DNA from: Entomortierella parvispora E1425
Taxonomy: Eukaryota > Fungi > Mortierellomycota
Reading direction: 5' to 3'
Length of the DNA stretch: 64,000 nucleotides
NCBI GenBank assembly: GCA_020891255.1
Contig: BQFW01000004.1
Location: forward strand, 310,001 to 374,000
Part shown: positions 9,164 through 55,237 of the stretch, piece after piece
Layout of the letters: every line of letters starts with the position of its first letter
How positions within the stretch are numbered: the stretch's first letter is position 1
Notes under the pieces: generated by a model
Databases searched by the model: none
Seen by the model: only the letters and a program-made list of their open reading frames with translations
What the model was told of the DNA's origin: nothing
Position numbers and translations under genes: made by a program

Positions 9164-11925
9164 GGTTGAAGGTGTTTGTTGTGGAGGGTGGGAGAGATGA
9201 AGAGGAGATGGAGGACGAAGGAGAGGATGATGAACAAAAAAAAAGTAGGGGTGAGCGAGTGTCTTTTATATCCTCGAGAGGGCAAAGGTTCTGGTCTGCT
9301 CGGCGTCATTGAGGGCGCTTAACAACAAGTCCAAGGATGTGTCATTGTAAAAGAGTTTTCTTCGATAAGGGTTTCTACGACCATCCCAGGAGTCTTTTGC
9401 GCGTGTTTTTTTTTTTTGCTTTTATTTTTGTTTCCCAGGATCAACTCAATGCACCAATCTGACAAAGGACAACGAGTGAATGAGCCCTCAGAAATCAATA
9501 CGGATGTCGCGTCCGAAAAGGGTTTTCAGGGTCGAGTGGGCGCTGAGAAAAGTTAGAGTTGCGTAGCCAACCTCTTGGCGTGATCATTTTCAAGAGCGCT
9601 TTTGGCCGCTCGTCCTATCCGATGGCATCTTTTCCCGGGAGCGGACCTCTGGACAGCAACAGCCTCGAGGAGGGGCCTGAATCATTGGATCGACGCAGGC
9701 CAAATGGGCTTTTTCAGCCTTCCTTTAAAGTTCCGCCATGAATCCCTGGCCGAAAAAGGCGACCGCCCTAACTTTCATACCGACAACAATGGAAAACAAT
9801 GGCAAGGCTTCTCTCTCACGCATACTATTCAACATGTATATGACAAATCCGGAGACAGATATCCCGCCCTTTGCCTTATTGCACAGTCAAAGAGCTTGCA
9901 ACCATGGCCGAGTTCAGGGAAATGGTGGGGAACCTTAACACCCTCTGCTGTTTTTCCTTGCTCTCTGTTGATCTCGCCTGCCAACAAAGCGTTGCAAAAC
10001 ATGAAAACAAAAACACAAAACGTTGACAATCAGCTCCGGATCTGTTCAGTTTATTCGGCTTTCTCCTGAAAGTCTAGGAGAATTGGCAAGTTGTAGAAAA
10101 GTGCTCTAATCTGCCTATGGCTCTAGCTCAGTGTTTCATTAGATCGGGTTCCTGAGCAAGCAACAACAAAGATGCCGTGTCTCTGGTACAAAGGAAGCAG
10201 TGAAACGGCGCAGTTACTCGAGAGGAGAGGGGGAAGAAGAATACATCCGACCGTTTTCAGTCGTTGGTGGTAAGAATGTTGGCGGTAAGAATGTTGGCGT
10301 GCACAAGAGAGACTGCCAAAAGGTGCTTACAATTACCGGGCGTGCCTGATTACACTATGTTTTCCAGACCCCTCGGACTCGCTTTTGCGCTCGGCTGTCA
10401 CCTGTAGTGTCGTTGTACCGAGGCTGATCAAGGCCCCATCGTCAAGTGGTGTAATCGCCCATTTGAGGATGGGTTCACAAGAATGATGGGTGCGGCTGGG
10501 GTTGGGCCGGCTAACTCAATTGAAACAACAAAACAGCGATTGAAATTCAGGCACAAGGACCATCGAGGGGCTGGAGGAGCGAGGCTCGGCTGTGCAGAGT
10601 CATAGTCAGGTGGACATGAAGGGGGATTTCTTTCCCAAGAGCAACAAAACACACCACTGGGACTCCAGAAGGCGAAACGGGCGAAACGGGTGAAGTGAGA
10701 TGAGAGCCCTCTCTCATTTCGGGCAACTGTGTGTTCACCCATCCATCCCCTGGGTTACCTGCTCCAACTGCCTGGGAAGGCCAATCTTCCCATGAGAGCA
10801 CTTTTAGCTTGCGTGTGATGGTGCAAACTCTGTCGACCTTGACGCTGATTGGACCCCGACCTTTCTCAGGGTCTACATCATCTTTGTCGGTCTTTGTCAG
10901 TCATCCCTGCCCTGACTGGTCCGCTATTTATGAGCTCTTTTTTCCCTCAAACACCGCCCAGTGCGACTCTTGGCGAGGCAGCACGCGAGCATGCCGATAC
11001 TGTGAGAGATAACCTGATAACATCCTCACCTCGGTTTTGACGGGCTCGTCTCGTTACTTTGAGTAATCAATCCTATTTTTTCAAACACAATGGTCCTGCG
11101 GCACGGGTGACAAAACAAATCCCGGGCCCAAGACACAAAACGAAAACAAAAAGTCACAGGTCCGCCATCTTCGCAACCACCCATTCTCGAGCTTTGGTGC
11201 GAGCATGCTACGGCCAGGCAAGCTCTCCAACAGTGGGAATGGCAAACTCCAAGATCAAACGCTGCGGCTCCAATAGAGCTTGCTAGGCTGTCCACTTTAG
11301 GATTGGCGCTTGTTGGATAATAAAAGCTAGAGTGATTTTGAAGTTTTCGTGACGAACAGGGAGATTGCTAACCAAAAATTGAGCCCCATTCCTCTCTCTC
11401 AAGGGCAAAGTTCAGTAGGTGGAGGTGTGGAAGGCACCTTTCAACTGGATGAGGCAGATAATGTTCATGATTGGAACAATGGCAACGATGAATATCAAAG
11501 TAAAAGAAAATTATCGAGACCGTTTTTTTTTTTTTGGTGGATTGTTCCAGGGACCAACGTTCCCATGGAAATGTGAAGGTTTACAAGTGATGTGAGCAAT
11601 CCCACGAGGTGGTCCCCTTCGTAAAAATACGGACAGACTACTGCACCAACATCAACTGTCTTGGGAGGTTCAGGTCTAGACGCCCACAAAAAAAAGCACG
11701 GTTGAATGTTGACCGGCCTCATATATTCGAGCAATTGCGACCCGAACTTGTTCACGAAAACCCAAAGGGATGTTCGCGTTATGTAGCCCTCTTTCTGGTC
11801 TCTAGTTTTGTCTAGCCGTCAGATCGACCCACAGAACGCAAAAACGCAAAAGTCTTTGAGAGCGAACTCCACCATGTTTATTTTAGCTGTTTTTCGCATC
11901 AGAAGTATCAAAAAAAGTCATTATT

Positions 11926-14205
11926 CTAATTGGCTCCTGGAGCTGCTGGGGGCCAAACGACGGGGGGGATCACAGAGTGCTCGTTCAGAGGACACATCGC
12001 GCTTCTGGGTCGGTTGCCCCACCACTCTGGGAATTCAATGCCACGCGACTCAAAGATGGCAAAGCACAACAGACCCGTGAAGGCCACACCAGCATCGAAC
12101 GCGGCCGAGAGCAAGTACGTATAACGGAGATGGGTCGAGGCGCGGTAACGGCGCAGGAAGAACTGGAAGAAGAAGCCAATGACCAGCCAGTTCACATACT
12201 GGTAAGGACGCGCTGGGGGCATCATACCTGTCGAGGCCAGCATCACAGGGACGTGGATGTTCTCCACCCAGGTACCAGGGTATCTCTTTTTGATGTAGTA
12301 GAAGGGAAGGGGGAGGATGAATCCCAGCAAGAAGAAGTAGTTGATCGCGTTGTACATGGACGTGGGTCCAAACATCCGGTTGGGCGAGATCACTCCCCAG
12401 ATAACCGATGCAGAGTAGAAGGTAGCCACTGGAGGGCAACTAAAGTCCTTGCTCTTCTCTGTGCAAATGTCGGGCTGAGTACGAAGCAACCAGTCTGCAG
12501 TCATGAGGTTGACAAATCCGGCAATGAGGGTTCCTGTGCACTGGGACCAGAACATGGCACGAGGGGGGATCTTCATGTAATGTCCAAGCTTAAGATCCGA
12601 GGTAAAGGTCAAGGCCTGGGTCATGGAGATATAACCCAAAGTTTTGAAGGTGACGTTGGCAATGGGGCGACCAGGGAGGATGTAACCAATGACATACTCG
12701 GTGATAATGTTCAGTCCAGGCTGCTGGTTGGTAAGGGCTTGAATCAGACCAACCGGCAAGACAAAGAAGCAGGAGAGACCAATGCACATGAGGACGCCCC
12801 ACCAGGGGAGCTTGTAGTCCCAGACCTCACAGAGGATAACAGCTACAATGGTCATAGCAAAGAACAAACTGAGATACCACCAGTCAGGAACCTCGGGGTA
12901 TGCCTGCATGAGTCTGTGGTGGATATCTTCGGAATGGTCGCGGGATTGTTTCCACTGGGCGACCAACTTGTGGCGATGATACAACCAGGTGTGGGTGACC
13001 ATGGACGTAAGGCCAGCAAACCCAATGCCGTAGGTCAGGGCAAAGAAGGTGGTGATACGGAGAGGACCATAGGCCTCATACTTGCCCTCATCCAATTGAA
13101 AATCGGTCATGATGGCGTCAACGTCATAGGTGGTTCCGTTCACGGTGTACAGGCTCGAGTTGACGATAGGGAACTTCTTGGCATCCCAAAGATTGAAGTA
13201 GTAGGCAAGGGGAGTCATGATGAAGGCAATGAAGGCAAAACCTACTCCAATGTTGACCTGGGCCCACCAGGGGACAACCAAGGGAGATGCAAGGTACGAG
13301 ACAATGTTATTCCAGTCCAAGGAGAGGGCGCCAATTCCAAGGCCTCTGTCACCTCCAATCTGGGCCAAGAAGATGTTGTCCGTTTTGATCCAACAAACCC
13401 AGGCAAAGTAGGTCAATGCCGGGAAGATGAAAGCAGGGAGCCAGTGGTACAGGAACATGCACAGGGTGGCGACCATGAAGACCTTGTAGCGAGACCACTG
13501 GCCAGGAAGAAGGTCTTCGTCCTTGTGCAGAGTATTGAACAGAGCGACCTGGACCAAGTTGGCAGGCCAGACCATGGCGGAGGGGTAGACAAGGTAGCGA
13601 CGAAGAACACCGGCCATACCGTAGCCCAGCATCTGGGTAGTGAGGATGAGCAGGAAGTTTGCCAACAGACCAAAGTCTTGCTTGTAGAAAACCTTTTGAA
13701 TAACAATGATATCAACAGCGTAAGCGGCACCAGCAGCACAGTTGGCAGTTAATCCAACAAGGACGTGCTCCTTGATATTGAATGGGCCGGGGTTCAAGAC
13801 GCCCGAGGGAAGAAGCCTGGCCATGGCCTTGCCGGTAGGATACGAGATCAATTGGATGACCAAGGCGGACAAACTCATAGGGACGGTTCGGAACCAGCTG
13901 TTGATCAGAGGCAGAGTTAGGCAACCAACGCTTTTCAAAATCATCTTGCAACATTCATCTGAAAAATGTACTTACAAGAACTGATTGACAAAGGAGAGCA
14001 AAACTGAGAATCCAATGGCCATGATCCAGAAGCGGAAGGTGAGAGTCGGCAACGAAGGGTCATCCTTGGTGGACACCATGGCTGCGACTTCGGGAATAGG
14101 GGAGTTTTCCTCCTCTTCGAGTTCAACAGATGTGCACTCAACATCGTGTTTTTCGTCAACGAACTCCTTCTCCGCAAGATACGCTTGCGTGGATTCTTGT
14201 GTCAT
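11926..14205 (-). CDS. OPT-family oligopeptide transporter; join(11926..13897,13976..14205), 733 aa
   Basis: OPT signature SPIPEVAAMVSTKDDP-TLTFRFW, plus NPGPFNIKEH and KLGHYMKIPPR, and many hydrophobic segments. The 78-nt intron (GTAAGT...CAG) restores NQFF-WFR. TATA at 14384-14390. Confidence 0.96.
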
Positions 14206-22105: not shown

Positions 22106-23215
22106 CTATATGAGAATACCAGCCTTCATGTTTGGCCAATGCTCCTGCATCTACGCAAGTTCTTCAACTTCAATATTGATGGCCTGTAGCCTCGTCACGT
22201 TCAACCGTCGCAATCGCTTCAGGCCGCTTAAATGTCCAAGCCCCTGTTCCAGGAAGCAATCCAATGAACTCCCAAGATAACCGTCTGGAGTCTCAGTCGA
22301 AGAGGTGTGTGAATGGTCGTCTTGCTCGTCGTCCGTGGTGTCCTTATCTTCACATGTCATGGCCAGAGCCTCAAACATTTCAGCATCACACCCAAGAGCC
22401 AAATCTCAAGTTGTCCCAGCCTCCTGTATGTCATTTCAAAATCTGGAGTTTCACCAGGTCCTATCTCGAACCAAATCGATAAGACCCTCAGTGATCGAGC
22501 GCACGGCCACGGACACTCGTTATCGATCCTCTCTCTAATGGGAGGGCAAGCGACATCCCCCAACCTGAATTGATCCGTGTCCTCATATTCATTGTCCACA
22601 AAATCGGCCCCCGGGCCGAGAAGCTCAGCGCGTTGTGACCTCCGATCGAAACTCCTTCCAGGTGTAATTCCCGTAATGTAATTCGACAGTGTTCAGCCAA
22701 AGCAAGTACTAGAGGTCTTGAATCGATCCAGGACTTGGGATGTATATATCCATCGTTCGAGTTAAGGTATCATAGTTGTCTCTGTCCCTGACCTCATCCC
22801 AATGCGTGCTACGTTTCTTTAGGGAAGATTCTGCATCATTCCCTGGCAACCTGATTTTCTTCAGCTGAAGGTGCTGGAGCCCGCAAATTTGCCAGAATGG
22901 CTCCGCGAGTCGGCCATGGAGATGCGAAAACACGACTTCTCGAGCAAACCTGGCTCTATACTGACCAATCCAGCCTCAAACTCGGGGGTCGGGGGGTAGG
23001 AAGGTATCCTTTTGTCTGACAGCTCCAATGATGCGCCAACGATAAGGTAGAAATGACGTATAGAAGCCCCACAAGACCAGCAGGGCACACAGAGCGTCGT
23101 CAGGGTCGAGATACTGGCAAATAATCTGCACAGGCAGAGGAATGCCGATGAAATGCAAGGTAGGCGAATCTGAGTCCAGGGCGAGAGTTGTGAGAGTGGA
23201 AATGTGGTCATGCAT
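22106..23215 (-). pseudogene. Disrupted F-box/RNI-like paralogue of the 26836-28791 gene
   Basis: Collinear fragments in several frames match the intact gene: IGIPLPVQIICQYL vs IAIPLLTDLICQQL, AEHCRITLRELHLEG vs AEQNRLTLQSLHLEG, WPCARSLRVLS vs WPCTPTLRVLS, LEQGLGHLSGLKRL vs LRQGLCHMSRLKRL. TAG at 22151 replaces the conserved Trp (ELA*MQEHWP). Confidence 0.85.
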
Positions 23216-23467
23216 CTATGCGCATGGAGTGACAGGCATGCATGTGACAATTGGATGAATGGACGGTCACGTTGCGCATGCCATGCCTTTTATTTTTTGC
23301 TTTGCTTGTTTGCCTGTCGCCACTTTTCCTCCTCCCCCTTTTGTTTCTCCAGGTATGCTCACCGCTGTCGCTGGGATGCGGACCTTGAAGCGCATGATGG
23401 ATCGCTACGTAGACTTGGTTCACGCACTCTGTCGCGCTCACACCCGTTCGCGTTTCTTCATGGTAGA

Positions 23468-26400
23468 ATGGAAGAGCAACCGCCCGTGGTCAAAGTCCTT
23501 GCTGTCCCCGAGCTCGTGGATCTCGTCCAGGTCTACTTGACTTCAAATACGGATCTAGTCCATCTCACCCTGGTCTCAAAGGCCTTCGCCCTGCTCTTCA
23601 ACCCACTTCTGTGGCAAACCATCGAGATCAGAACGGAACGGCAGCATCGCCTCTTTGTCAACACTCCACAGGTTCAGGATGCTATCCGTCGACTGGGTAA
23701 CGACTGCGTCCGAGTCATTCGTGTTCGAACGCCCAAGAGCTTGGCACCCCTTGTCCAGGCGAATACCCCCTTACTGCAGCTACACACCTTAGAGTTCCCT
23801 TGGCCAAGACGGCTGATCTTTGAAGACATGGTATTCAGGGCCAGGAATCTGCAGCCGTTCGAGGAAGAGCTGGACGTATTGAACGAGCCTTACCCCGATC
23901 ATTTTTTTCTTGAGCGGGAGAAATTCCACAGAACCAGAGCAGAGCCAGCACTTTCCATGACTCCTGAAGCAACAGACCATCGACCTCTTGCAGCAACCCG
24001 GCCACTCCGCTCTTTGTTCTGGTTACAACAGCGGCGAAAGGGCATTTGGAGACTGGAGTTTGATATTCTGCATCTCGCTCTCAGGATGATTCGATCAGAA
24101 GTGCCTCTTCGCCAGGCTGTCGAGGACATGTTCCATCTTCGACAATCACAGGAGGCCCTGGCAGAGAGCAATAGGCTGCTGCGTCCCTTATTCGCCCAAG
24201 CCGCATCAGGAGACCTGGCTGGAGCAAAGTCAAAACTGGAAGCTGATCAGGACATTGAGGACGTCTTCTTTCGTCAGGCCACAGTTCTTCCAGAGCTGGT
24301 GTCGAAATTGAGGAGAGGCGTAAAGTTGTGGGAAAAGCTGGTACCGGAGGAGGAGTCCTTGCTCCTGTTGATCGAGGATCAAATTAATCGGATCAACAGC
24401 TTTTTGGCAGAGGATGACAGGGAGCTCAGCAAGAGTGTCACTAGTGTTTGGGAGAGGGCTAAATTGCGCTGCCAGAAGCATGTAGGGGACGTCGAATCGC
24501 TTCAACGCAAGCTCCACACTCAGGAACATCAGCCGTATCGAGCATCTGCAACCATACGACGACTGCAGGAACGAGTAGAACGCAACCGTCAACTACTACA
24601 GCAAGACGTACAACAACAAAGACATGATATCTACCAACAATACATGACGCTTCTTTTGTCACGCGAAAGGACCTTGAAGTATTGGGATAGCGACTTGCAG
24701 ATGATGCTCATTAGCTTCCATCACTCGCACCAGCGACAGGGACAGTTATTCATTACACCAATCCAACGCTCTCTTCGGAATCATCTACAAAGCGAACCAA
24801 TATTACTGTTCCAGGAGTCCAGCGAGAATCGATCTCCCAGTTTGACTCTGTCAGGGCAATTGCTGGACCGTATGCAAACTTCAGTTGCGGAACAATTGAT
24901 CTACCTTTCCAACTTTAAGCCCGAGGAGAACGTTCGACCCGCGCCGCCACTGGTGGTACCAGATCCTTTCAACGAGCCCCCTCTACTTTCAGAATGGCCG
25001 AGCTATTCCGACCTTTGGGATTATTTTGACCCTGTCAGCGATGTTGACGAATGGCTGGTACCGTTTCTCACTCAAGTGTGTCCTAATCTGAGGTCATTTG
25101 GATGCATATATTTCCCGTTCGCGTCCGGATCCCTCCTCCGAGCCCTGTCATCCCCTCCTCTCTCTCTTTCCTTGACTGTCTTGTCCCTGGTCAACGCGAA
25201 TCCTGAATTGCACGTCGACGCCTCCGAACTCTTACAGCAGCTCATCGACCTACCACCTCGCTTGGACTCCTTCAGGTTCGGAGCAGAACTGGTGTTCAAT
25301 TCTGAAGCATCATCGACACAAGGACTAGAGACTCTCTTTTCTCGCTTCTCAATTCAGGGGTTGCCGGCACTTGGATTGACAACTCTGATGATCGAGGGCT
25401 CCATCCGCGACTATGACTCGAGGATCTGGACAGGAATTTTGCGTCGGTGCAGCAATCTCGAAACATTGGGCCTCAGAAGCTATTTCCCAGGCACGCTTCT
25501 GAGAGAACTTGCTGAACTGTTTATCAACGAGGGCGCTTGTCCGCTTCTCCGGGAACTCTGCTTATCGGGGGGGACCTTGGATCAAGATGCAGAGCTTGCA
25601 AAATTCCTGGAGGCTTGCAGCATGAGTGCCGATAATAGTAAAACTGGAGACCATAGTGACGGGAGCGGAAGATATGGACCCATTATCTTGAAATCACGAC
25701 GGAAGGGTGTCACACGGATCCAGCTGATGGATGCGGGTCACTTGGGCCAGGAGTCGTACAGGGTTTTGCATCGCTGCTACCACAAGACTCTGACGCATTT
25801 GAGTATTCATGACTGTCCAGGTCCATTGTCCTACAAGTATCGGCCTACTTCACCACTGCTATCTGACTCATTCAATGGTGGCGACACTGCCGTGCATCCA
25901 ATCCTGGAGACTCTTGCCTTGTTCACGGGCCTTCAAACTCTGGAAACATTCCCATCCAGGAGCTTCTACCCATACCCAACAACAGAGGTCAATCCTGGAA
26001 CATTCTTGGATGCCCATCATTTGATCCACCAATATGACAGGATATCAGAGGAAACCGCAAACTCGACAGTGGCAGCAACATTGATGCCTGTGGCATTCCA
26101 GCCTTGGCAGTGTTTTTCCACCCTACGGGTTTTACAGATCATTATCGGCGGCAATCTTTTGGAAATTCCTGAAAAAGGAGGGACTGCGTCTGGAAATGGC
26201 GGTCGTGAAACTAGAGGGGTACCAGTCCAGCGTCTTGCTGTTCTACAAAACTGCCGAAAGATCTGCAGAATGTTAGGCACCTTGACAGCGCTCGAGGAGC
26301 TGTATTTAGGATCTGATAGCACAGGAGAAGTCTCTGCATTGTACCAAGCAGCACACGATGAGGTCTACGAGGGTAAACCTCCACAATCGCCAAGCAATGA

Positions 26401-26785
26401 ACAACCCTGGACATCATTACCACGGAGAACGCCCACTGGATCCACAGAAGCATCCACTCTTCCTGGACTGCGAGCGATCCCTCATCTTGTCCGAGAAACG
26501 GCCATCTATTACGGTTTGCAAATGGACAAAAGTCTCAAGCAGGACGCGCAGTCAAACTGTCTGTTGATGTCGCTGGAAAGTGGCCTGGATGAAATGGCGG
26601 AGCTCCAGGCGTTGCGAGTCCTCGATATCAGTTTTATGGACCATGAGATTGGTCTCCCGGAACTTCAATGGATGATGGAGCACTGGACCTCTTTAAAGTC
26701 AGTACCCGGCCTGATGCGAGACGATTGGACAGATGAACTCGATGACTGGCTACGGATCAATGCACCTCATGTTCGATACTATTGA
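23468..26785 (+). CDS. F-box-like / RNI-like LRR protein with large helical insert (~1105 aa, intronless)
   Basis: N-terminal VLAVPELVDLVQVYL...LVSKAFALLFNPLLWQTI F-box-like motif. LRR region (CPNLRSF, CSNLETL, CPLLREL). C-terminal SLESGLDEMAELQALRVL...ELQWMMEHW signature. ATG at 23468 preferred over the ORF-track start at 23204. Confidence 0.85.
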   Translation: MEEQPPVVKVLAVPELVDLVQVYLTSNTDLVHLTLVSKAFALLFNPLLWQTIEIRTERQHRLFVNTPQVQDAIRRLGNDCVRVIRVRTPKSLAPLVQANTPLLQLHTLEFPWPRRLIFEDMVFRARNLQPFEEELDVLNEPYPDHFFLEREKFHRTRAEPALSMTPEATDHRPLAATRPLRSLFWLQQRRKGIWRLEFDILHLALRMIRSEVPLRQAVEDMFHLRQSQEALAESNRLLRPLFAQAASGDLAGAKSKLEADQDIEDVFFRQATVLPELVSKLRRGVKLWEKLVPEEESLLLLIEDQINRINSFLAEDDRELSKSVTSVWERAKLRCQKHVGDVESLQRKLHTQEHQPYRASATIRRLQERVERNRQLLQQDVQQQRHDIYQQYMTLLLSRERTLKYWDSDLQMMLISFHHSHQRQGQLFITPIQRSLRNHLQSEPILLFQESSENRSPSLTLSGQLLDRMQTSVAEQLIYLSNFKPEENVRPAPPLVVPDPFNEPPLLSEWPSYSDLWDYFDPVSDVDEWLVPFLTQVCPNLRSFGCIYFPFASGSLLRALSSPPLSLSLTVLSLVNANPELHVDASELLQQLIDLPPRLDSFRFGAELVFNSEASSTQGLETLFSRFSIQGLPALGLTTLMIEGSIRDYDSRIWTGILRRCSNLETLGLRSYFPGTLLRELAELFINEGACPLLRELCLSGGTLDQDAELAKFLEACSMSADNSKTGDHSDGSGRYGPIILKSRRKGVTRIQLMDAGHLGQESYRVLHRCYHKTLTHLSIHDCPGPLSYKYRPTSPLLSDSFNGGDTAVHPILETLALFTGLQTLETFPSRSFYPYPTTEVNPGTFLDAHHLIHQYDRISEETANSTVAATLMPVAFQPWQCFSTLRVLQIIIGGNLLEIPEKGGTASGNGGRETRGVPVQRLAVLQNCRKICRMLGTLTALEELYLGSDSTGEVSALYQAAHDEVYEGKPPQSPSNEQPWTSLPRRTPTGSTEASTLPGLRAIPHLVRETAIYYGLQMDKSLKQDAQSNCLLMSLESGLDEMAELQALRVLDISFMDHEIGLPELQWMMEHWTSLKSVPGLMRDDWTDELDDWLRINAPHVRYY

Positions 26786-26835: not shown

Positions 26836-28791
26836 TCAACAAAAATATTTGTCAGCCGCAGTGATGCCCGGTAATGATTCGAATTGTGGCCAATGCTCCT
26901 TTATCCATTCAATCTCTGCGGGGCCAACCCTTGCCCTGGAGGGTCGCAACAACATCAAACGCTTCAATCGCTTGAGTCGGGACATGTGGCAAAGTCCCTG
27001 CCTGAGCGAAAGATCCAGAGAAACCTGACGGCACGCACTCCATGGAGGTCCATAGGGATCTTCATCTTCTTTCTTGTTATAGTTGTTATAGTCGACCCAG
27101 GGGTCAAAGTCTGCCATCACCTCGTTGCAGTCCAGGGTCAAATCTTCCAAAGCCTCCAGTTGCCCGAACCGCTTGTAGACGGCCGTAAAGTAAAAAGGGA
27201 AACGTTCTGCCTGCCTCTCTTTGGTAATCTTGAGATTCAGCGAGAGCACGCGCAGGGTTGGAGTACACGGCCACGACAGTCGCACCCTTGGCACCATCAG
27301 TATCTCTTTAGGCATCGACCTCTGAGCCAGGGTCACGTCCATATCCTCTTCCATTTCGTCCTCGCTGCCCTTCAAGACCTCTCCGCTAAACAAGAATTGG
27401 AACCAGTCCACGGTAGGTGTTCGAGGACTGTCCCACATCATGACTCCCAGCCCTGGCCGATCCATAGCGATACCATTGGGGGAACTTCCGATCGTAATGA
27501 ACGTCTCCAATCGGGGACATTGTTCCAAGAGTTGTAACACAGACTTGCTGTCGAAAGAGGAGCCGCAGTGTACGATAGAGATTCTTTCAAGCGTAGGATA
27601 GTGCATTGCCAAAGACCGCTTGCCGTCATAAAGATCACAGCGACAATTGAGAGTGAGAGACCGCAATCCTCGCGGTCGTGCGGGCGCCAACGGCGGCTGT
27701 TCTCCATCGTTCGCACGCAAGAGACTGCGGAGAATCCTGGCGGCGCACCAGTCAGTATCTCCTAGGAGGATGAGATTCAACTCCTCAATCCTGCTCACCC
27801 GAAGCACATCAGCCAGTTCGGACATCCGTTTGGCGTCCATAGACGGCGCTTTGAATGCGACGAGATTTGGGCAATGCCTTAATATCTCGAACAGGACCCA
27901 TGACGGTGCATGTCCTATGTTGGTGCAACTCAGTCGTGTGAGTCGAAGCTTGACCTCCATCGTCTCCAAGAGAGACCGAGCGGTGGGAGGAGGACTAAGG
28001 CGTTCCGGGAAGAGTTGGTTCTGATAGTGAAGCCACGTTGTTTCGAAATCTCCTTGCCAGAACGAGTCATTACACTGCCCTTTCAGGGTCAACTCCTGGA
28101 CCCTGTCCGGCAAGTGCAGAATCACATCAACAATGTTCTCCATGGGGATCGGCCCAAGCACCAGCACCTCGAGGCTCTCCAGCGTGGGCAATAGCTGGAT
28201 CAGTCGAGGTACGAACGGTAGAGGCGTGTTCGCCGTACTGACGAATCCCTCCAGGTGTAAGCTTTGTAAAGTCAACCTGTTTTGTTCAGCAAGGGTCAGG
28301 ATACGGCGACTGAGCGTTGCTGTGTCGACCTGTCCGACAAACTCGCTCTCTTTATACGAATGATTGTCGTCCATCTCGTCCCAGTGCATCCAGTTTCTTT
28401 CGGCCGCCGCCCGTCTGTGCCCCACTTGCTTGAGCGTCCTGAGTTGCTTGCAAAGGGCTCCCTCTTGAAGCAAGGCGTAGCCGAGCCTGTTCTCAGAATG
28501 GGGCAAGACGACGTGCCGAGCAAAACGGGCGCCGTAGCGAACCAGGGCCTCTTCGACCTCTTTGGAGGGACAGAGCGGAAAGATAGTGTTGGGTCTGTCA
28601 TCGTTTGACCGGACACTGTTCAAAGTCCGCCAGCGATGTTCTAGGAATGCCTCGTGGAATGAACGCGACACGAGAACCGCATTGGCAAAGTGCCATGGCT
28701 GGAGCTGCTGGCAAATGAGGTCAGTCAATAGTGGGATGGCAATGACTTTGTGCACAGCCCTGCCAACAAGTTGACTCGGGTCCCTGTCCAT
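26836..28791 (-). CDS. F-box-like / RNI-like LRR protein (651 aa, intronless)
   Basis: F-box-like N-terminus, LRRs (CPNLVAF, CPRLETF), and the same C-terminal signature (LSLRQGLCHMSRLKRLKRL...EIEWIKEHWP). Convergent with the previous gene, 50 nt between stops. Confidence 0.88.
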   Translation of the reverse strand: MDRDPSQLVGRAVHKVIAIPLLTDLICQQLQPWHFANAVLVSRSFHEAFLEHRWRTLNSVRSNDDRPNTIFPLCPSKEVEEALVRYGARFARHVVLPHSENRLGYALLQEGALCKQLRTLKQVGHRRAAAERNWMHWDEMDDNHSYKESEFVGQVDTATLSRRILTLAEQNRLTLQSLHLEGFVSTANTPLPFVPRLIQLLPTLESLEVLVLGPIPMENIVDVILHLPDRVQELTLKGQCNDSFWQGDFETTWLHYQNQLFPERLSPPPTARSLLETMEVKLRLTRLSCTNIGHAPSWVLFEILRHCPNLVAFKAPSMDAKRMSELADVLRVSRIEELNLILLGDTDWCAARILRSLLRANDGEQPPLAPARPRGLRSLTLNCRCDLYDGKRSLAMHYPTLERISIVHCGSSFDSKSVLQLLEQCPRLETFITIGSSPNGIAMDRPGLGVMMWDSPRTPTVDWFQFLFSGEVLKGSEDEMEEDMDVTLAQRSMPKEILMVPRVRLSWPCTPTLRVLSLNLKITKERQAERFPFYFTAVYKRFGQLEALEDLTLDCNEVMADFDPWVDYNNYNKKEDEDPYGPPWSACRQVSLDLSLRQGLCHMSRLKRLKRLMLLRPSRARVGPAEIEWIKEHWPQFESLPGITAADKYFC

Positions 28792-29098: not shown

Positions 29099-30349
29099 AT
29101 GTCCAGAAGATTCTCTTTATCCTCCAAGTTTCCCCTTTCCTACTTTCTGTCGGAGGAGGACGATGGCTTTTATTTCAACGTGCAAGACGACGACCCATGC
29201 TCCTCCTCAACACCCCTATCAAATGCATCGTCCACTTCCCCGTATGTGGTCTCGCACAGCATCACGGTTGCAGCCCCTGAGACCAACCACGCTCTCTCCC
29301 AGTCCTTTCCTCCCGAGACTCCCGGCAGAACCCACGTTGCCACTCTAGGCTCCCTTCCAGTCCCAAGACTGGTATCCACCGGGATTGATCCTAGACTCTT
29401 TGCTAAAAATGAGTCCGGAAGGTTTGCAGTCAATGTTTTTGAGTACTCTGTCACCTTCGAAGCCTCGCCCCTGATCAATACTCAACTGGAGAATCCGTCT
29501 TACAATCCGACGTTGACGGCCAGCGTCACTTATGGTCATTGGTATATTTATCCCCGGTACCGCATGAACTTTTTCTTGAGCCTCCGCTCGCAAGCTCTGG
29601 GCTTTAGCAACGGCCTGTACGCGGTCGGGTATATGGCACTGATTCGAGACCGCTTTGATGACTTTGAGCCTGCAGTCCACTCCATTGGAAACTTTCACTA
29701 CTGGAGAAGGAACACAATGTTTGGGTGCACCAATAGCCGCGGTGGCACCTTGTACGACGGCAAGGACATTACGGATGATATTCTAGATGCCTCTGGTGGC
29801 GAGTATGAGACTGTGTCGTCGTCGATCCCACCTACTAGATCCAGACAATCGAAGCAAGCGGCCCAGCATGTGAAAGGAAAGGGAAAGGGAAAGGTACGCT
29901 GTACCGTTGAAGGCTGCACGGCCTCATACGCGACGCTCAGTGGTATGAACGGTCACAGAAGTGACTTCCATGGCTTTGGTGGCAAGAACTTTCGGTGCCT
30001 CGAGTGGAAGTGTAGCCGCCGTATCAAGAGCAACACCCGCTGTACCATTGCATGCTCAATGGACTGTGGGCACATATGCGGGGAGGTGTTACCGCAGAAG
30101 AGCAGTCTGATTCGACACATCTGCACCCATCATACCGGAGCAAAGCCCTATCTCTGCAAGTACTCGGATAAAGGATGCACCGCAGCGTTTTCGAGGATCG
30201 ACGCCGGGCAAAAGGGGCACTACGATCTATGCCATAACGGAGCTCCAGACCCTCCTGTCAAGATAAGAAAAAAGGGTGGCTCGGCCCAAGTCCCGAAGAG
30301 TACCCTTCCCAATCCTTCCATCTCTGCTGCTGGCCTTTCGTCTTTTTAA
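29099..30349 (+). CDS. C2H2-type zinc-finger protein (416 aa)
   Basis: Fingers CTVEGC...HRSDFH, CGHIC...HICTHH, TGAKPY linker, CKYSDKGC...HYDLCH. TATAAA near 29008. Confidence 0.8.
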   Translation: MSRRFSLSSKFPLSYFLSEEDDGFYFNVQDDDPCSSSTPLSNASSTSPYVVSHSITVAAPETNHALSQSFPPETPGRTHVATLGSLPVPRLVSTGIDPRLFAKNESGRFAVNVFEYSVTFEASPLINTQLENPSYNPTLTASVTYGHWYIYPRYRMNFFLSLRSQALGFSNGLYAVGYMALIRDRFDDFEPAVHSIGNFHYWRRNTMFGCTNSRGGTLYDGKDITDDILDASGGEYETVSSSIPPTRSRQSKQAAQHVKGKGKGKVRCTVEGCTASYATLSGMNGHRSDFHGFGGKNFRCLEWKCSRRIKSNTRCTIACSMDCGHICGEVLPQKSSLIRHICTHHTGAKPYLCKYSDKGCTAAFSRIDAGQKGHYDLCHNGAPDPPVKIRKKGGSAQVPKSTLPNPSISAAGLSSF

Positions 30350-31630: not shown

Positions 31631-32372
31631 GCTTTCAAGTGAACTGCTGGTGGTCGCTATGAGTCCTGAATAGTCGTACAGTAACGGAAAGCTCCAGGTT
31701 GATCATCCATGTTGCTTTTGGATTGCAGAGAAATTTAAATGGAAAGAAAGGATGGCAGGCATGGAATGGGGACGCGACATGAGCGCGCGTGCAGTGGCTT
31801 AGAAACATGTGACAAGTATCCCTCCGAACTGGGGTGGAGAGGGGTCTGTTCGGCTTGCCACCACGCGCCATGGTAGGTCAAGGTGGCAAAGAAGTGGCAA
31901 TTGGGAACCGTGGCTGCAAAAAGACAAGGAGAGGGAGTTGTGATTCATTTCATGTCTGTCCTTGATGGTGCCAAAGACATTTGCAAAAAAAAAAAAAAAC
32001 TGCTGCTGCTGGGTTTGTCTCGGTTATGGTCAAATCACCCTCTGCAACTAGGTTGACTGCATGGGTCTGGCGCACTCGCAGTGCAGCTCGAAACGAGTAA
32101 TAGCATTTCTGCTATTGTTGATGCTGCTGCTGTTGCCGAGATTCCCCTTTTTCTGCTTTCTTGACCCTCTGAGTCTTGCTTCGATTCCTTCCTATTGTTG
32201 TCCTCAGTCAGACCTTTGCTGTTGAGTGGGCAAGTTGGATGAGTGTAGAGAAACATGTTGTCACCATGTCTGCCTGTGATATCAATTATGTTTTATTATT
32301 GTTGGTAGCTTGGAAGGAGCTGAGGACAATAAGGGGACTGGGTAGGTATCAAGACTGAGGCAATGATTATTA

Positions 32373-32705
32373 TTACTGCGGTTGGAAGGATCTGATCTGA
32401 TAGTTGCCCTGTAAGTTACCGCTACCCCCGGATAGCGTGGAGCCCACAAGTGCGTGGAAGTTGGTGCCCGTATAGTATTGGACTCTGTGGCCAGATCTAT
32501 TTTCCACAGAACGTACGTTCTGTCCGCGCTGGATGAATGCGCAAATTTCAGCAGTGTTTTGGACCTTGCTCATGGACCACTGGCAACGTGTCCCGTCACC
32601 ATTCCAGCCACTATAGATGCAAAAGTATCCAGGGGTACAGGAGAAAGCCGCTTCAGTTGGGGTAAAAGCCACCGCCAGAAGCACAGATAAGGCAGTGAGC
32701 TTCAT
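32373..32705 (-). CDS. Small secreted protein resembling actinobacterial peptidase inhibitor family I36 (SMPI / beta-gamma-crystallin-like), 110 aa
   Basis: Signal peptide then SCTPGYFCIYSGWNGDGTRCQWS...NVRSVENRSGHRVQYY...NLQGNYQIRSF, with four Cys. Putative 5-prime-UTR intron at 32708-32799 (GTAAGA, CTAAC branch, TAG). TATAAA near 32876-32881 and poly(A)-like signal near 32292. Confidence 0.8.
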   Translation of the reverse strand: MKLTALSVLLAVAFTPTEAAFSCTPGYFCIYSGWNGDGTRCQWSMSKVQNTAEICAFIQRGQNVRSVENRSGHRVQYYTGTNFHALVGSTLSGGSGNLQGNYQIRSFQPQ

Positions 32706-34181
32706 TACTATTGTACATACACAATTTCATTTGCATCCCAAGTGGTTAGTGCTTGGGTAATCGAAGATGATCAGAAGCAATTCGATGGGGTCTTCTTACA
32801 TGAAATGAGTATAGGCTATGACAGTGGGAGAAGGAAGTTCTTTTTTTTTTCAAGGTGGGCGGGGAGTACATGCTCTTTATAACAATCGCTCTGGACGGAA
32901 GGATAATGATGATGCCATTCTGTGTGGAAAATAATAGACGGGAACTGGCGGCAAGATTCAAGAAACAAGGGGGTGCAGGTAAGGGGGAGTAAACTGGTGG
33001 GGACTGCGTGCAGGAGTTTCAGGGCCACGCGTCAGACCACCGGCAGCCGGCAACCTGGCGCTTGTAACCAGCTGCTCATTGATTTTGTGACAGTGGCATT
33101 CTCTCCCCTCAACTAGCTGAGGAGAAAAGGAGTAGAGAAGGAGAAGGACGAAGGAGGCAGGATTAGAAGGGGCAACAGAGACAGGGCAAGAAATATTAGT
33201 GGGTGCGACAGATATCTGGCCCACTCAAAAGCGAGTAGGATGACACCGGGACCCGAGGTTCGAACATTGATGGATTTTCCTCGACTACGAGCTCTGTCTC
33301 TGCCTTTGTCAACATCGTTTTCTACTTTCAGATAGTTAAATCATCTTGACCGTCTTTGTCAATTATAGGCCGTTTGTCGAGCTCCTCCTGGTCATCCTGC
33401 ACAATATATGAAACACACGAGCTTTGCTGTGCAGGCCGATCTGGTCTTTTTCATTCTGGTCATCTTGCATCGAGGAACAAGAGACTCTTCAGTGCCGATC
33501 GTCCCTACATTTGAGAAACGGGACATGTTCTTGTTATTGAATGAAGCCTGGCTGAATTCGATATTTATACCACCCGCGTGCTTGCAAAGGCAATGAGAGA
33601 CAATGGCTTTAAACCACTGTCTTTGACAAACAGAGGAATCCTTGAGTCTGCAAAAAGCTCAGGACTTTGCACATCGTCTTTGACGGCGCCTGCCTGGACG
33701 ACAGTGCTTGAGATACCGCTGTGGCCATTCCAGGAGAGATTCGAGATCCAGCACGAGTATGACGGGCATCCAGTCGTTCGTAAGAGAGGTGCGGCCAGAG
33801 AGCCAGAGATTGAGGTGACTATCTGAATATTTGCCCAGCACAGGTCTCGTGGCATGTCCGGGGATGGCATTCAAACAAAGACAAACAAGCCAAAAAGGCA
33901 AGAGCAAATTAGCGTTGTGTCCGTGGTCACTCAGTATTTCAGGCACAGGGACCACTCAACACTGCACTGCACTCATCTGTGACGCAGATTTGCGTGCGGG
34001 GCAGTCGATTTAGTCACGTGAAAACACGCTGGCTCTGGCTCTGCACCGTCCCGAGGCGCTTGATCTTGCGCTTCATTCGAGACGAAGCGAGCCATCTCTT
34101 TCCATCCATCCCTTCTCTCCATTACAGCTCAGCTCTCCTCCCCTCTCTCCCCCTCTTCCTCTTCTCCTCATCCCCTACACA

Positions 34182-35436
34182 ATGTCCAACGTCCGCATCC
34201 TCGTCGCCTGCAAGCGTGTTGTCGACTATGCTGTCAAGATCCGCGTCAATGCCGCTGGCACTGCTGTCGAGACCGCCAACATTAAGCACTCCATGAACCC
34301 CTTTGACGAGATCGGAACCGAGCAGGCCATTCAGATCAAGGAGGCCCTCGCCAAGGCCAAGGGCAACGCTGAGGTCGTTGTCGTCTCTTGCGGCCCCGCC
34401 AAGGCTCAGGAGACCCTCAGAACCGCTCTTGCCATGGGTGCTGATCGGGCCATCCATGTCGAGACCAACGACGAGTTGCAGCCCTTGGCCGTCGCCAAGT
34501 TGTTGAAGGCCGTTGTTGAGAAGGAGAAGCCCAACTTGGTGATCTTAGGCAAGCAGGCTATCGATGACGACTCTAACCAGACTGGACAGATGCTCGCTGG
34601 TTTGTTGAACTGGCCCCAGGTAGGCAGATAGATACCTCTCTCTCTCTTTATGGTCTTCTTTTTCGTGTCCCAAAATGTTCTCACGGGAGTCCCGGGAGGA
34701 TGGTGTGACAGTCTTGGACGACGACGCCCACTCGGGACGGGGACACACAGGATGGAGCAGCAGCAGACGCAGACAGCAAAGAGGAAGCGACTCTCCAGGA
34801 AGGGCACCTTGTTGCTATGGGGTCGCATCACCATAGCGCCATGTCGACATCCATTTGGCTCGTGAATGCTCTGCTCAGTCGAGATTGCGGGGATCAGTCA
34901 TATTTAGGAATCAGCCCAGACGAAGAACTTACTCATCTGGAACCCTTTTTTTTGCTCCCCCCCCTTTCCTCCTCTTTTGCTAGGCCACCTTCGCCTCCAA
35001 GGTCGAGCTTACCGATGCCGCCATGACCGTCACCCGTGAGGTCGATGGAGGAGTCGAGACTATCAAGACCACTCTCCCCGCTGTTCTTACCACTGATCTT
35101 CGGTAAGGTTGCCCTTATAAACAATGACTGTGTGTCATGATCCCAATTACGGATGACAAACAAACAACTCTAACGCTTTTTTTTCTATTTGTTTTTGATG
35201 TTGCTCTATGGATGCTTCGTAGCCTCAACGTGCCCAGATACGCTTCCCTCCCTAACATCATGAAGGCCAAGAAGAAGCCTTTGGCCAAGTTCACTGTTGC
35301 TGATCTTGCCGTCGATATCAAGCCCCGCTTGGAGACCTTGAAGATTACCGAGCCCGCCAAGAGACAGGGAGGCAAGATCGTCGAGAGCGTCGATGACTTG
35401 TTGGACAAGCTCAAGAACGAGGCCAAGGTCTTGTAA
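34182..35436 (+). CDS. ETFB: Electron transfer flavoprotein beta subunit; join(34182..34619,34984..35102,35223..35436), 256 aa
   Basis: [45 protein letters not shown]|ATFAS, TTDLR|[18 protein letters not shown]. Two GT-AG introns restore the frame. Confidence 0.97.
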
Positions 35437-36175: not shown

Positions 36176-37366
36176 TTAATGCTTGAGAGGAGCGATTCCA
36201 ATGGAAGGCGACGAGGTCTGGGAGAAGACGCAGTAGTTGTTCTTGATGAAAACATCTCCCAAGATCCAAAGACCGTCCTGACCACCCTGGACACCCGAGA
36301 AGCAGTTGCCGGAACCATCTCCGAGATCCTCGTAGGCCAAATCGGCCACTGGGACGTTGAAGGTGACACCACCCAGTTTGAATCCAACATTGGCAGTGCT
36401 GGAGGCGGCCGAGCAAGGCACCAACCAACCGTTGTTGGGGTCGTTGGTCGAGCCGGGAATCTTGGCGTGGATGGCAGCAGCAGCAGCATCACCGACAATG
36501 ATCAAGGTCGTACCGGTGTCAACAATACCCTGAGAGGTCTGCTTGAGCGAAACGCCGTTGAAGGAAGCATCCTGGACCAAGATCTGCCAGTAACCCTCCT
36601 GGGTGACGGGAACGTAGGTCAAAGAGCCAGTGTACTTGGTAGAGTCAATACCGCCAAAGAGGTAGGCACCTCCCTGCCCGTTGAAGAGACGCTCTGAGGG
36701 CAAGAAGACAGACACTACGGGCTGGGCCAAGACACCAGCAGAGATGGCATTGTCCAAGAAGGTCTTGACACCCGAGACGGACTCGATGGTGTCAAAGCCA
36801 AGACCGAAAAGACCGTCCTCGGGGGAGGAACCGAACTGGGAGGATTCCTTGGTGGCCAAACCGATGGTCTGACGGACAGAGATGCCTCCGACAGAGACCA
36901 GGTCGGAACCGAGGATACCCGAGGCCGAGGAGCCATCACCATAGGAGATGGACCACTTGCGACCATCGGCCTGATAAGTCGAGGACTTTGCCGAGTTGAA
37001 GCGCGTGTGGGCCGTGCAAGCGCTGGTGGTGCAGGTGCTGGAAGGAAACCAAATATCCGACGATCCAGTGTCAAAGTCCAGCTTGAAGACCTGAGCAGGG
37101 GTTCCGACATTGACGGATCCGTAGTACTCGAGATCGGGGCTGACATCAGTCAAGGGGACGCTTCCGGTGGAGCCAGCAGCCTTGATCTGGAGCTGAGGGT
37201 AACGAGCATTCAGCTTGCGGATCTGGGCTGGGGTGTTGTGTCTAAAGTTCTCGCGACGGGTCAAGGGGACAGCATGACCATCGGGATGGGGGCGTCTGGC
37301 CACAGGGGTGGCCTCGGAGACAGCGAGGACGGCGACGGCCAAGGAAAGAAGAGCGGTGATCTTCAT
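36176..37366 (-). CDS. Secreted aspartic protease, copy 5 (396 aa, intronless)
   Basis: Signal peptide, both DTG motifs intact. TATA at 37457-37463. Confidence 0.97.
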   Translation of the reverse strand: MKITALLSLAVAVLAVSEATPVARRPHPDGHAVPLTRRENFRHNTPAQIRKLNARYPQLQIKAAGSTGSVPLTDVSPDLEYYGSVNVGTPAQVFKLDFDTGSSDIWFPSSTCTTSACTAHTRFNSAKSSTYQADGRKWSISYGDGSSASGILGSDLVSVGGISVRQTIGLATKESSQFGSSPEDGLFGLGFDTIESVSGVKTFLDNAISAGVLAQPVVSVFLPSERLFNGQGGAYLFGGIDSTKYTGSLTYVPVTQEGYWQILVQDASFNGVSLKQTSQGIVDTGTTLIIVGDAAAAAIHAKIPGSTNDPNNGWLVPCSAASSTANVGFKLGGVTFNVPVADLAYEDLGDGSGNCFSGVQGGQDGLWILGDVFIKNNYCVFSQTSSPSIGIAPLKH

Positions 37367-53041: not shown

Positions 53042-55237
53042 ATGGTAAATATTACCAGAGACACCGTCAACAAACTTCAAATTGTCAGGAACGACATTCT
53101 TAATCCTATACCTTGAATTTCCTGTGTAGAACCAAATCTTGGAAGCAGCTGCAGCAGTGGCAACTGCTCCCGCCGTAACCCGCACAGATCTCCCTACAAC
53201 CCCTTCCCTCATGCCCACCACCACCTCTGCTGAGACTACCAACTCTACCAGTCTCGAAACCCCCATGTCAACTGGGTATCATAACCGACCTTTCGAACAC
53301 CGCGGCATCGCATCTACAGCCCTGATCGTTAGTGCGGTGTCGGGTGGGCTTTTAATCCTGACTATACTCGGTCTGCTGATCTGGTGCGTACTCCGTGCGC
53401 GACGGAGACGTCGATGCCGGGATCGGCTGTCTGATACAGAGATTGCACTGAAGCAATCCATTGGAGGACGTAACAGGGATAGCCACCCACGATCCTCATC
53501 CTCGAGTGAGAAGAACGGTAGCTCGTTCAACGGCCAGAGCTCATACCAGATTCATCCCGCTACCTCTTCCATGACCATGATGGTAGACGAGCTAGAATCA
53601 ACGGCGGGCTCCAATCGATCAACGCTACTGGAGACGTCGTCGTCTGTGACTGGAAAAGTAACCTATCCACCCAAAGCAAAAACCTCTCCAAAGTTGAGCA
53701 CAGCTACGAGAGGAAGCCGCTTCCCAAGGTCAAATGCAGTTGGTGGAACGCAGTCGTCTTCGATCCCTTCCAACGGTCAGTCACTGCTACCACCACCACG
53801 ACAGCAACACCACAGTACTCACGATAGCACCTATTACCCGCATGTGCATCAGCCTCAGCCCAGGCAGCCAGGAAAGCAAAGCCCCGTGGATGGCGTTACG
53901 CCTCTAGAGAGCTTTTACCACGACATGATTAACGCCCCTGAAACCCCCTCGTCGCCGCCGCCTCCAGAGCAGGCTCGACGACTGGTCCTGTCCTCAAAGC
54001 ATGCTGTCCCCCTCCCTCTGCCTTTCACTTCTTCTTTCTCATCCTCCACCACCACCCTAACTTCCCCCTCCAAGGCAGGCCCAGAGTCCACAAAACCAGC
54101 TGCCACGGCCAGCACTCATAAAAAGTCTGCCTCCATGTCATCTTCACCGGCAACGGCTTCAACCATTACTTCTCCCAGGAGTGCCACCGTGGCGTTGGAC
54201 TGGCCACGGGTTTCAAAGGAACACATGCCTCCACCACCCCCACCCCCATCCATGCCCCCACCAGCCATCCCGGAAATTATCTCCAATCCGCTCATTTTTC
54301 CAGAGCTGACCACTACGACTGTCTCAGCATCGGCAGCATCCGGGGATAACCCATCCTCTCCATCCACTGTACAGTCACCCACATCACCCACGCAAGTTCC
54401 ACCCACCCCCACCACTGCACGTAAAACAAACCGCTCCAGGGCGGCCACAGAGTCGTCTGTGAAATCACCTCGGAGTTCCAATTCGGGCGCCAACCGATCC
54501 TCCAACGGACATGCGGTCGAGTCGATGCAGCAGCAACAACTACTGCAAGACTCTTCCAGAGGAGCCTCTTCCAAGGTAAAATCTCCTAACATCCCATACT
54601 TTTCCTTTGTTCTTTTACTACATTAGTTTGCTGTTGCTCCACAATTACTTCTTTTTTTTTTTTTTTTGCAAAAAGTTTTTGACAACTTTCTGACACAAAC
54701 TCACAGTTGGCCTCTCCGGAAACAGCATCCGCTTCATTAGGTCAGAGCGCCATCCTGACTGTCCCAGCACGATCCGGTCCTGGGCATCGAAGGACCAAGA
54801 GCAACGTCTTGACCCTGGACTCAGTGGTCATGCCTATTTACGTTCCAGCTTCCGCTGCGTCTGCGACCACTTCCTTCTCAGCCTTTCCTTCCCCGCCCGG
54901 GACGAACCCTTCTCCCTCGATCCCTTTGAGGGCTATGGCTCGTACACAGGACCGTAAGCCACCCGTGTCTTCCGTGTTGGAACCGACAAAGTCACTGGGA
55001 CCAATGACAGTCCAGGTGCCACGGCCAACGTCCTGGCACTTGAAGGTAGAGGAAGGGGGTGGGATGGTTGCCGTCGCAGGTGCCAGCGCAGGAGCAGCAC
55101 CAGGAGCAGGAGCAGCAGCAGGAGCAGGAGGAAAGGGGGAGGAACAAGCGGCACCGTTACAGAGAAATATCAGGGAGGCCGTCGCTGATAGTCGCCGGGA
55201 GGGAGTAGTACATGCTCCGTCGTATTCGTACCTGTAG
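53042..55237 (+). CDS. Single-pass membrane protein with short Thr-rich N-terminus and long Ser/Pro-rich tail; join(53042..53044,53130..54575,54707..55237)
   Basis: ATG-only first exon (ATG|GTAAAT...TAG|AAC). One TM helix (IASTALIVSAVSGGLLILTILGLLIWCVL) followed by an Arg cluster. Second intron at 54576-54706. No recognised domain. Confidence 0.7.

Follow-up and report, generated by a model that had tools for sequence, protein, structure and literature searches.

A putatively secreted I36-family protein of Streptomycetaceae ancestry encoded in the genome of the Mortierellaceae fungus Entomortierella parvispora

Here we describe a small gene in a 64,000-nucleotide (nt) stretch of the genome of the fungus Entomortierella parvispora E1425 (GenBank assembly GCA_020891255.1, contig BQFW01000004.1, positions 310,001 to 374,000 of the forward strand), which is referred to below as the window. 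The gene, called the I36 gene, occupies 32373..32705 on the minus strand and encodes in a single exon a protein of 110 amino acids (aa) that matches the Pfam family PF03995 (Inhibitor_I36). Its ancestry is bacterial and lies in the Streptomycetaceae, and in all likelihood it is now a normal fungal gene in Mortierellaceae. It represents a real and previously unreported bacterium-to-fungus transfer, of a kind already known and not surprising to a specialist. A preliminary description of this DNA, made from the sequence alone, had quoted the same 110-aa open reading frame (ORF), which was re-derived here with an identical sequence, and had proposed a domesticated actinobacterial gene acting as a secreted protease inhibitor or antimicrobial. 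The origin, the chromosomal integration, the fold and a plausible intron were borne out, but the inhibitor or antimicrobial function was not.

The best matches of the protein among 5.8 billion proteins were ~126-aa Streptomyces proteins named 'peptidase inhibitor family I36' (E ~1e-44), to which the mature part is 74-77% identical, in agreement with the actinobacterial origin suggested before. The best 120 matches listed all belonged to Streptomyces, Streptacidiphilus or Kutzneria, with 56-77% identity. Relatives were encoded in the genomes of ~180 bacterial species, and the best 80 of these were Streptomyces together with one Streptacidiphilus and one metagenome-assembled Actinomycetota genome. 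The Streptomyces gene was followed by an acyl-CoA dehydrogenase gene in 27 loci and by an acyl-CoA thioesterase gene in 24, roughly a third of the loci, and the recurrence of these neighbours indicates a stable chromosomal position in Streptomyces. These neighbourhoods held core metabolic genes only, with no protease partner. When soil metagenomes were scanned with a protein pattern, only actinobacterial loci were matched, all of them high-GC with a G+C content at third codon positions (GC3) of 0.87-0.98, and a fungal-specific DNA probe of the metagenomes gave 0 matches.

In the fungus, whose assembly totals 38.9 Mb in 20 contigs, the I36 gene is present as a single copy at C4:342376-342705, ~342 kb inside a long contig, and it is the sole PF03995 match in the whole genome. 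Its GC3 is 0.58, within the range of the host ORFs (0.52-0.69), compared with a median of 0.91 and a range of 0.83-1.00 in the Streptomyces homologues (n=80), so the preliminary remark that its codon usage is not Streptomyces-like was correct. The local GC of ~49% is the same as in the remaining window. These values bear on bacterial contamination or misassembly, in which the ORF would come from a co-sequenced actinobacterium or an endosymbiont. The very high protein identity to Streptomyces is the only point in favour of such an origin, and it becomes untenable because the gene has eukaryotic neighbours, lies as a single copy deep inside its contig and has a GC3 in the host range. It is flanked by the gene ETFB, which has spliceosomal introns, and by a zinc-finger gene; the same gene occurs with conserved fungal flanks in independent assemblies and sequencing runs of two other Mortierellaceae genera; and no Burkholderiaceae, the endosymbiont lineage, were found among the listed relatives. 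Contamination, which the preliminary description had also dismissed, is effectively refuted by this evidence.

A profile built on the fungal sequences only detected just two further fungal clusters, from Mortierella antarctica and Linnemannia elongata, the latter being KAK5820691.1, annotated as 'putative peptidase inhibitor [Linnemannia elongata]'. Logan contigs contributed three more copies, one from Linnemannia (96% identical) and two of the M. antarctica type (98.6% identical), which were colinear with the reference loci and had flanks conserved within each lineage. Two Logan contigs considered as possible transcripts were rejected as such, being colinear unspliced genomic DNA. The ORF, the four cysteines and the core motifs were intact in all six fungal sequences from the three genera. 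A vertical spread of the best matches across fungi, named earlier as the pattern that would speak against a transfer, was not seen, and the fungal matches found were confined to three Mortierellaceae lineages. The L. elongata gene (locus 10001-10339 (+)) lies in a gene-sparse stretch with gaps of 3 kb and 8 kb, and the closest gene upstream of it, at locus 4867-6807 (-), encodes a Crinkler-domain (PF20147) protein.

Protein trees of 164, then 43 and 38 rows, with 90 alignable columns, were star-like and close to polytomies. In this phylogeny of fungal and actinobacterial matches, proposed earlier as a check, the fungal copies fell among the Streptomyces sequences, but without marked support for their placement. 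Because of these near-polytomies, synonymous sites were examined. Identical codons at residues conserved between two copies were counted and compared with shuffles within each amino acid, a procedure that controls for the codon usage of each gene. The results showed an excess of identical codons in every fungal pair, namely 44 against 29.8 expected between M. antarctica and L. elongata (p 5e-5), 38 against 29.6 between E. parvispora and M. antarctica (p 0.003), and 37 against 30.5 between E. parvispora and L. elongata (p 0.03). Between 11 and 19 of the identical codons in each fungal pair ended in A or T. No such excess was found in 12 fungal-Streptomyces pairs (p 0.06-0.79).

At four positions, all four fungal sequences compared shared a codon that is rare or missing in the bacterial genes. 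These were TGT at C23 (1/80 Streptomyces genes), CCT at P25 (2/58), AAT at N69 (0/80) and AGR at R74 (0/77). The shared codons at N69 and R74 run against the preference of the host, which uses mostly AAC for asparagine (81%) and seldom AGR for arginine (16%). Two rare amino-acid replacements are common to the window and L. elongata copies, T71S, seen in 0/137 bacterial proteins, and Y83F, seen in 3/137. The predicted fungal signal peptides are similarly shortened and end in T(A/PT)EAA(F/Y)xC, and a GT..AG intron candidate ends 2-7 nt before the ATG at all three fungal loci, although the upstream regions of the three genera do not align. The shared synonymous codons, the similar signal peptides, the rare replacements and the GT..AG candidates together favour a gene that was acquired once, with or without subsequent spread among fungi, and we consider this the likely history from the sequences compared.

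Several observations weigh against a gene that was acquired once and then kept. Fungal monophyly was obtained in 0/200 bootstrap trees, and the maximum-likelihood trees never united the three fungal copies, which are 77-81% similar to bacterial proteins and only 64-71% to each other. No synteny was found among the Entomortierella, Linnemannia and Mortierella loci, which occupy three unrelated positions. No I36 protein was found in more than 25 other Mortierellaceae species represented in the database by their ETFB proteins, so a single old transfer would require many losses. Finally, 14 nucleotide differences separate the two Linnemannia copies, and 10 of them change an amino acid, giving a ratio of nonsynonymous to synonymous substitution rates (dN/dS) of ~1.08 from these small numbers. 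The absence from other Mortierellaceae is weak evidence, because the protein of the window is itself missing from the collection.

If Entomortierella, Linnemannia and Mortierella had each received the gene independently, every time from a different Streptomyces donor, this would agree with the closer bacterial than fungal similarity of each copy, with the lack of monophyly in the bootstraps, with the three non-syntenic loci and with the patchy distribution across the family. Under such a history, however, the GC bias must have been lost separately each time, and fungal pairs would not be expected to share an excess of identical synonymous codons that includes A- or T-ending and host-disfavoured ones absent at the same sites from 77-80 Streptomyces genes. 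The similar shortened signal peptides and the joint possession of T71S and Y83F by the window and L. elongata copies also argue against it. A single fungal clade was not rejected in the approximately unbiased (AU) test (p 0.275), and the fungal terminal branches were long (0.20-0.73 compared with a median of 0.18), which accounts for the identity pattern. We therefore regard separate transfers as improbable. The opposite direction was weighed as well, in which the subfamily would be originally fungal or eukaryotic, or an old fungal gene lost nearly everywhere. PF03995 is listed in passing among the small secreted proteins of the basidiomycete Tricholoma matsutake (PMC6980582), so the wider family is not strictly bacterial. 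However, the close subfamily is present in ~180 bacterial species with a conserved neighbourhood as against three fungal lineages only, bacterial sequences make up the broader family as well as all of the closest Atlas clusters, and the long, derived branches are the fungal ones, which leaves a fungal origin very improbable.

A last alternative is a decaying or silent relic, whose ORF would have remained intact fortuitously or whose inactivation would be recent, and which would have no function in the fungus. It would fit the probable omission of the protein by the annotators of the genome, as well as the dN/dS near 1 of the two Linnemannia copies. Against it, six ORFs with all four cysteines have stayed intact in three genera although synonymous sites are saturated (dS 0.6-1.8), the dN/dS between genera is 0.12-0.46, and the gene has sequences that resemble eukaryotic promoter, splice and poly(A) signals; a relic is thus very unlikely. 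Between the M. antarctica-type copies, the differences amount to two synonymous changes. The 600 nt upstream of the two Linnemannia copies are 97% identical, and their dN/dS could reflect either relaxed or diversifying selection. The fungi have kept the gene over a long period, in which there may have been bursts of rapid change.

The flanking sequences of the I36 gene resemble those of a eukaryotic gene. On the minus strand, a TATA-like box, TATAAAG, is found at 32875..32881, ~75 nt upstream of a candidate splice donor, and would serve as the promoter element that the preliminary description took it for. From the positions of this box and of the donor, a short non-coding first exon in the 5' untranslated region (5'-UTR) is placed at 32800..32850, its 5' limit being approximate. 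It would be followed by a candidate 92-nt spliceosomal 5'-UTR intron at 32708..32799, with a GTAAGA donor, a CACTAAC branch point and a TAG acceptor, 37 nt lying between CACTAAC and TAG, and the acceptor lying 2 nt ahead of the ATG. The same intron had been pointed out before, and it is plausible by its splice pattern. Three out-of-frame upstream ATGs lie inside it and would be deleted by splicing. The 64-kb window, read on both strands, contains 4 occurrences of the compound pattern GTAAG-N30-60-CTAAC-N15-45-YAG, compared with 0.78 expected from shuffles, and the candidate is one of them. It also fits the splice grammar of the host, because the two verified introns of the neighbouring ETFB gene, delimited against the E. 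parvispora protein, have GTAGGC and GTAAGG donors, a CTCTAAC-type branch point and a spacing of ~48 nt from branch to AG. The I36 gene may thus be expressed, with splicing of this intron. Another ATG stands at 32869-32871 (-), 4 nt past the TATA box; a transcript that included it and had the intron removed would carry a 24-codon upstream ORF whose TAA overlaps the main start (TAATG), but this ATG probably lies upstream of the transcription start.

Within the coding sequence, residues 1-19 (MKLTALSVLLAVAFTPTEA; 32649..32705, minus strand) have the features of a signal peptide, which include a hydrophobic core, a single basic residue and small amino acids at positions -3 and -1, and cleavage is predicted after TEA. 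This segment was of low confidence or disordered in the structural model described below. The signal peptides of the two other fungal copies resemble it and end in ITAEAA(F/Y)NC. Residues 20-110 (32376..32648, minus strand) form the mature domain, a PF03995 domain of the beta-gamma-crystallin type with a double Greek key and four invariant cysteines, and the TAA stop codon follows at 32373..32375 on the same strand. An AATAAA motif at 32292..32297 (-), ~76 nt downstream of the stop, may be a polyadenylation signal. A scan for bacterial promoters and terminators found nothing exceeding chance.

The neighbours of the I36 gene in the window are fungal. A C2H2 zinc-finger gene is located at 29099-30349. 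On the other side, the intron-bearing ETFB gene (34182-35436, plus strand) is divergent from the I36 gene, and its exon 1 is 100% identical to the Entomortierella parvispora ETFB. A gene for a secreted pepsin-type aspartic protease is located at 36176-37366 (-), at a distance of 3.5 kb from the I36 gene, and farther away 11926-13944 (-) encodes an OPT oligopeptide transporter; nothing was found that links either of these two genes to the I36 gene. Three further ORFs, at 23204-26785 (+), 26836-28791 (-) and 53139-54626 (+), encoding 1193, 651 and 495 aa, had no Pfam match at E <= 1e-5.

The ETFB locus was compared with those of M. claussenii, E. chlamydospora and E. beljakovae. ETFB exon 1 is conserved at 90-94% at the aa level, but both flanks in these three species differ from those in the window, with a large Ion_trans channel gene upstream of ETFB and XPO4 or SNAPC3 downstream. 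Only ETFB was shared with the window, and no I36 gene was found within 8 kb in any of the three. Since the flanks are unlike those of its relatives, this part of the E. parvispora chromosome has been rearranged. The exact 110-aa protein was missing from a collection of 15 billion proteins in which the E. parvispora ETFB protein was present, and the I36 gene has probably been left out of the genome's public annotation.

The family assignment, which the preliminary description had already proposed, was confirmed with the hidden Markov model (HMM) of PF03995, which matched residues 18-84 with 53.4 bits (E 2.6e-14), well above the gathering cutoff of 21.1. A scan of the window protein against NCBIfam gave no match. 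PF03995 was also matched by 61 of the 62 relatives in the broad family alignment. The cysteines C23, C29, C41 and C55, together with several long motifs, were invariant across 54 close relatives, and neither these relatives nor the window protein have a cysteine after C55. The four cysteines would be expected to form the disulfides C23-C29 and C41-C55. PF03995 was found above cutoff in the control genomes of Caulobacter vibrioides and Methanosarcina acetivorans as well, so the family extends well beyond actinobacteria.

An AlphaFold2 (AF2) model built on the alignment of the relatives had moderate confidence, with a predicted local distance difference test score (pLDDT) of 70.4 and a predicted template modelling score (pTM) of 0.60. 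The model showed a double Greek-key fold and superimposed on beta-gamma-crystallin domains with Z scores of 8.0-9.8 and a root-mean-square deviation (rmsd) of 2.4-2.9 A over 78-88 residues, in support of the crystallin-type fold suggested earlier. Foldseek matches of the model to crystallin domains had template modelling (TM) scores of 0.46-0.64. Weaker structural matches, with Z scores of 4.4-5.5, were obtained to AFP1, an antifungal protein of Streptomyces, and to SKLP, the killer toxin WmKT and MiAMP1. By eye, the microbial calcium-binding motif N/D-N/D-x-x-S/T-S was absent, the equivalent stretches reading Q-N-V-R-S-V and Y-Q-I-R-S-F.

The proposed protease-inhibitor function was not supported. 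To our knowledge, the Streptomyces metalloproteinase inhibitor SMPI (PDB 1BHU) is the founding and the only characterised member of the MEROPS/Pfam family I36. A single-sequence search gave no match to 1BHU at E <= 10, and the subfamily profile did not find it either. The broad family profile reached SMPI only at an E value of 0.15, a marginal link that covers residues 3-56 of SMPI, its N-terminal half. In this alignment, CTPGYFCIYSG is set opposite SCPAGSLCTYSG of SMPI with the motif C-P-x-G-x-x-C-x-Y-S-G common to both, and SMPI has no cysteine where the window protein has C41 and C55. The scissile bond of SMPI, reported to be the disulfide-held Cys64-Val65, is the defining feature of the reactive site; no counterpart was found in the window protein, as the alignment stops at SMPI residue 56 and there is no cysteine beyond C55. 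1BHU was not among the 50 best structural matches of the model. Many PF03995 proteins far from SMPI bear the name 'peptidase inhibitor'; hundreds of Streptomyces proteins are labelled 'I36 peptidase inhibitor' on the strength of a very distant relationship to one characterised inhibitor.

Most likely, the protein is secreted, stabilised by disulfides and active outside the hypha, where it would bind a target belonging to other microbes. It may be a proteinase inhibitor with a reactive site different from that of its distant relative SMPI, a tentative suggestion made by analogy. Equally tentative is an analogy with single-domain crystallin-fold proteins, in which it would bind cell walls or act as an antimicrobial binder like AFP1, SKLP or MiAMP1. 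The rest of the probability goes to a function that would be neither of these two. More speculative, and rather improbable, is the idea of a captured weapon, in which a Streptomyces gene would have been turned on bacteria or rival fungi, its secreted product being an inhibitor or antimicrobial effector in competition within the hyphosphere, with fast arms-race evolution in some lineages (dN/dS ~1 within Linnemannia) and an expression that came to depend on an intron after the transfer; its mode of action would differ from that of SMPI, because the reactive-site loop is missing.

Together, these observations can be placed in the following sequence of events. The source was a gene for a small four-cysteine PF03995 protein exported by the Sec pathway, native to Streptomycetaceae and often located beside acyl-CoA dehydrogenase and thioesterase genes. 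It entered a Mortierellaceae fungus, most likely once, either before the lineages of Entomortierella, Linnemannia and Mortierella split or with later spread between fungi. After the transfer, the Streptomyces codon bias was lost, and a shortened signal peptide was retained that should work in the eukaryotic secretory pathway. A TATA-type promoter would have been gained, and probably also the 5'-UTR intron that removes upstream ATGs. Purifying selection would then have acted on the gene, which relocated or was lost in most lineages.

Bacterial genes in Mortierellaceae are an active topic, including nonribosomal peptide synthetase (NRPS) genes, ice-nucleation proteins and NLR-like genes. InaZ-type ice-nucleation proteins derived from bacteria have been described in Mortierellaceae, E. 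parvispora among them (PMC12978214), and bacterial-like NRPS genes in M. alpina (bioRxiv 10.1101/2020.08.21.262279). In a survey of horizontal gene transfer (HGT) in 44 early-diverging fungi, the xenologs typically had few or no coding introns (PMC11291939). Apart from the T. matsutake listing, an I36 gene in fungi is not mentioned in these InaZ, NRPS and early-diverging-fungi HGT accounts. The present case adds a small, apparently secreted protein from another donor group, the Streptomycetaceae, which share the soil habitat with these fungi. It is unusually clean, as ~77% protein identity has been kept while the codon bias has been completely rewritten, and it may be a useful example of the speed at which host codon usage is adopted, of the adaptation of a bacterial signal peptide and of intron gain in untranslated regions. 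Its absence from the 15-billion-protein collection also shows that annotation can miss short transferred genes.

Compared with SMPI, the window protein belongs to the same Pfam family, carries the same N-terminal CP(A)GxxCxYSG motif and is likewise a small, predicted secreted, disulfide-bonded all-beta protein of Streptomyces origin; it differs in lacking any cysteine beyond C55 and in matching SMPI only marginally by profile over residues 3-56. It is much closer to the uncharacterised ~126-aa Streptomyces I36 proteins, such as those of S. kronopolitis and Streptomyces sp. NPDC048111, with which it shares the four cysteines, the mature length and the motifs CxPGYFCIYS, RCQWS, NVRSV, HRVQYY and GNLQGNYQIRSF(K/Q)PQ. 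In the Streptomyces proteins, the signal peptide is longer and begins with MRR(I), and a linker of ~10 residues precedes the first cysteine; their genes have a GC3 of ~0.91, no intron, and acyl-CoA dehydrogenase and thioesterase neighbours. In the fungal copies, by contrast, the signal peptide is short and resembles those of eukaryotes, the codon usage is that of the host and the flanking signals are of the eukaryotic type.

In its modelled fold, the protein shares the double Greek key with spherulin 3a (1HDF), the Neurospora APP domain (5Z6E) and Protein S (1NPS), with Z scores of 8.3-8.6, and more distantly resembles AFP1 of S. tendae (1GH5), SKLP (1F53), WmKT (1WKT) and MiAMP1 (1C01). The identity to these microbial and plant crystallin-fold proteins is 9-15% over 69-88 aligned residues, the canonical calcium-binding motif of the microbial ones is absent from the window protein, and a common fold alone is no proof of a common function. 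Like the InaZ and NRPS cases in Mortierellaceae, the I36 gene is a bacterial gene that has been integrated, ameliorated and kept; unlike them, it came from a Streptomycetaceae donor and belongs to another gene family.

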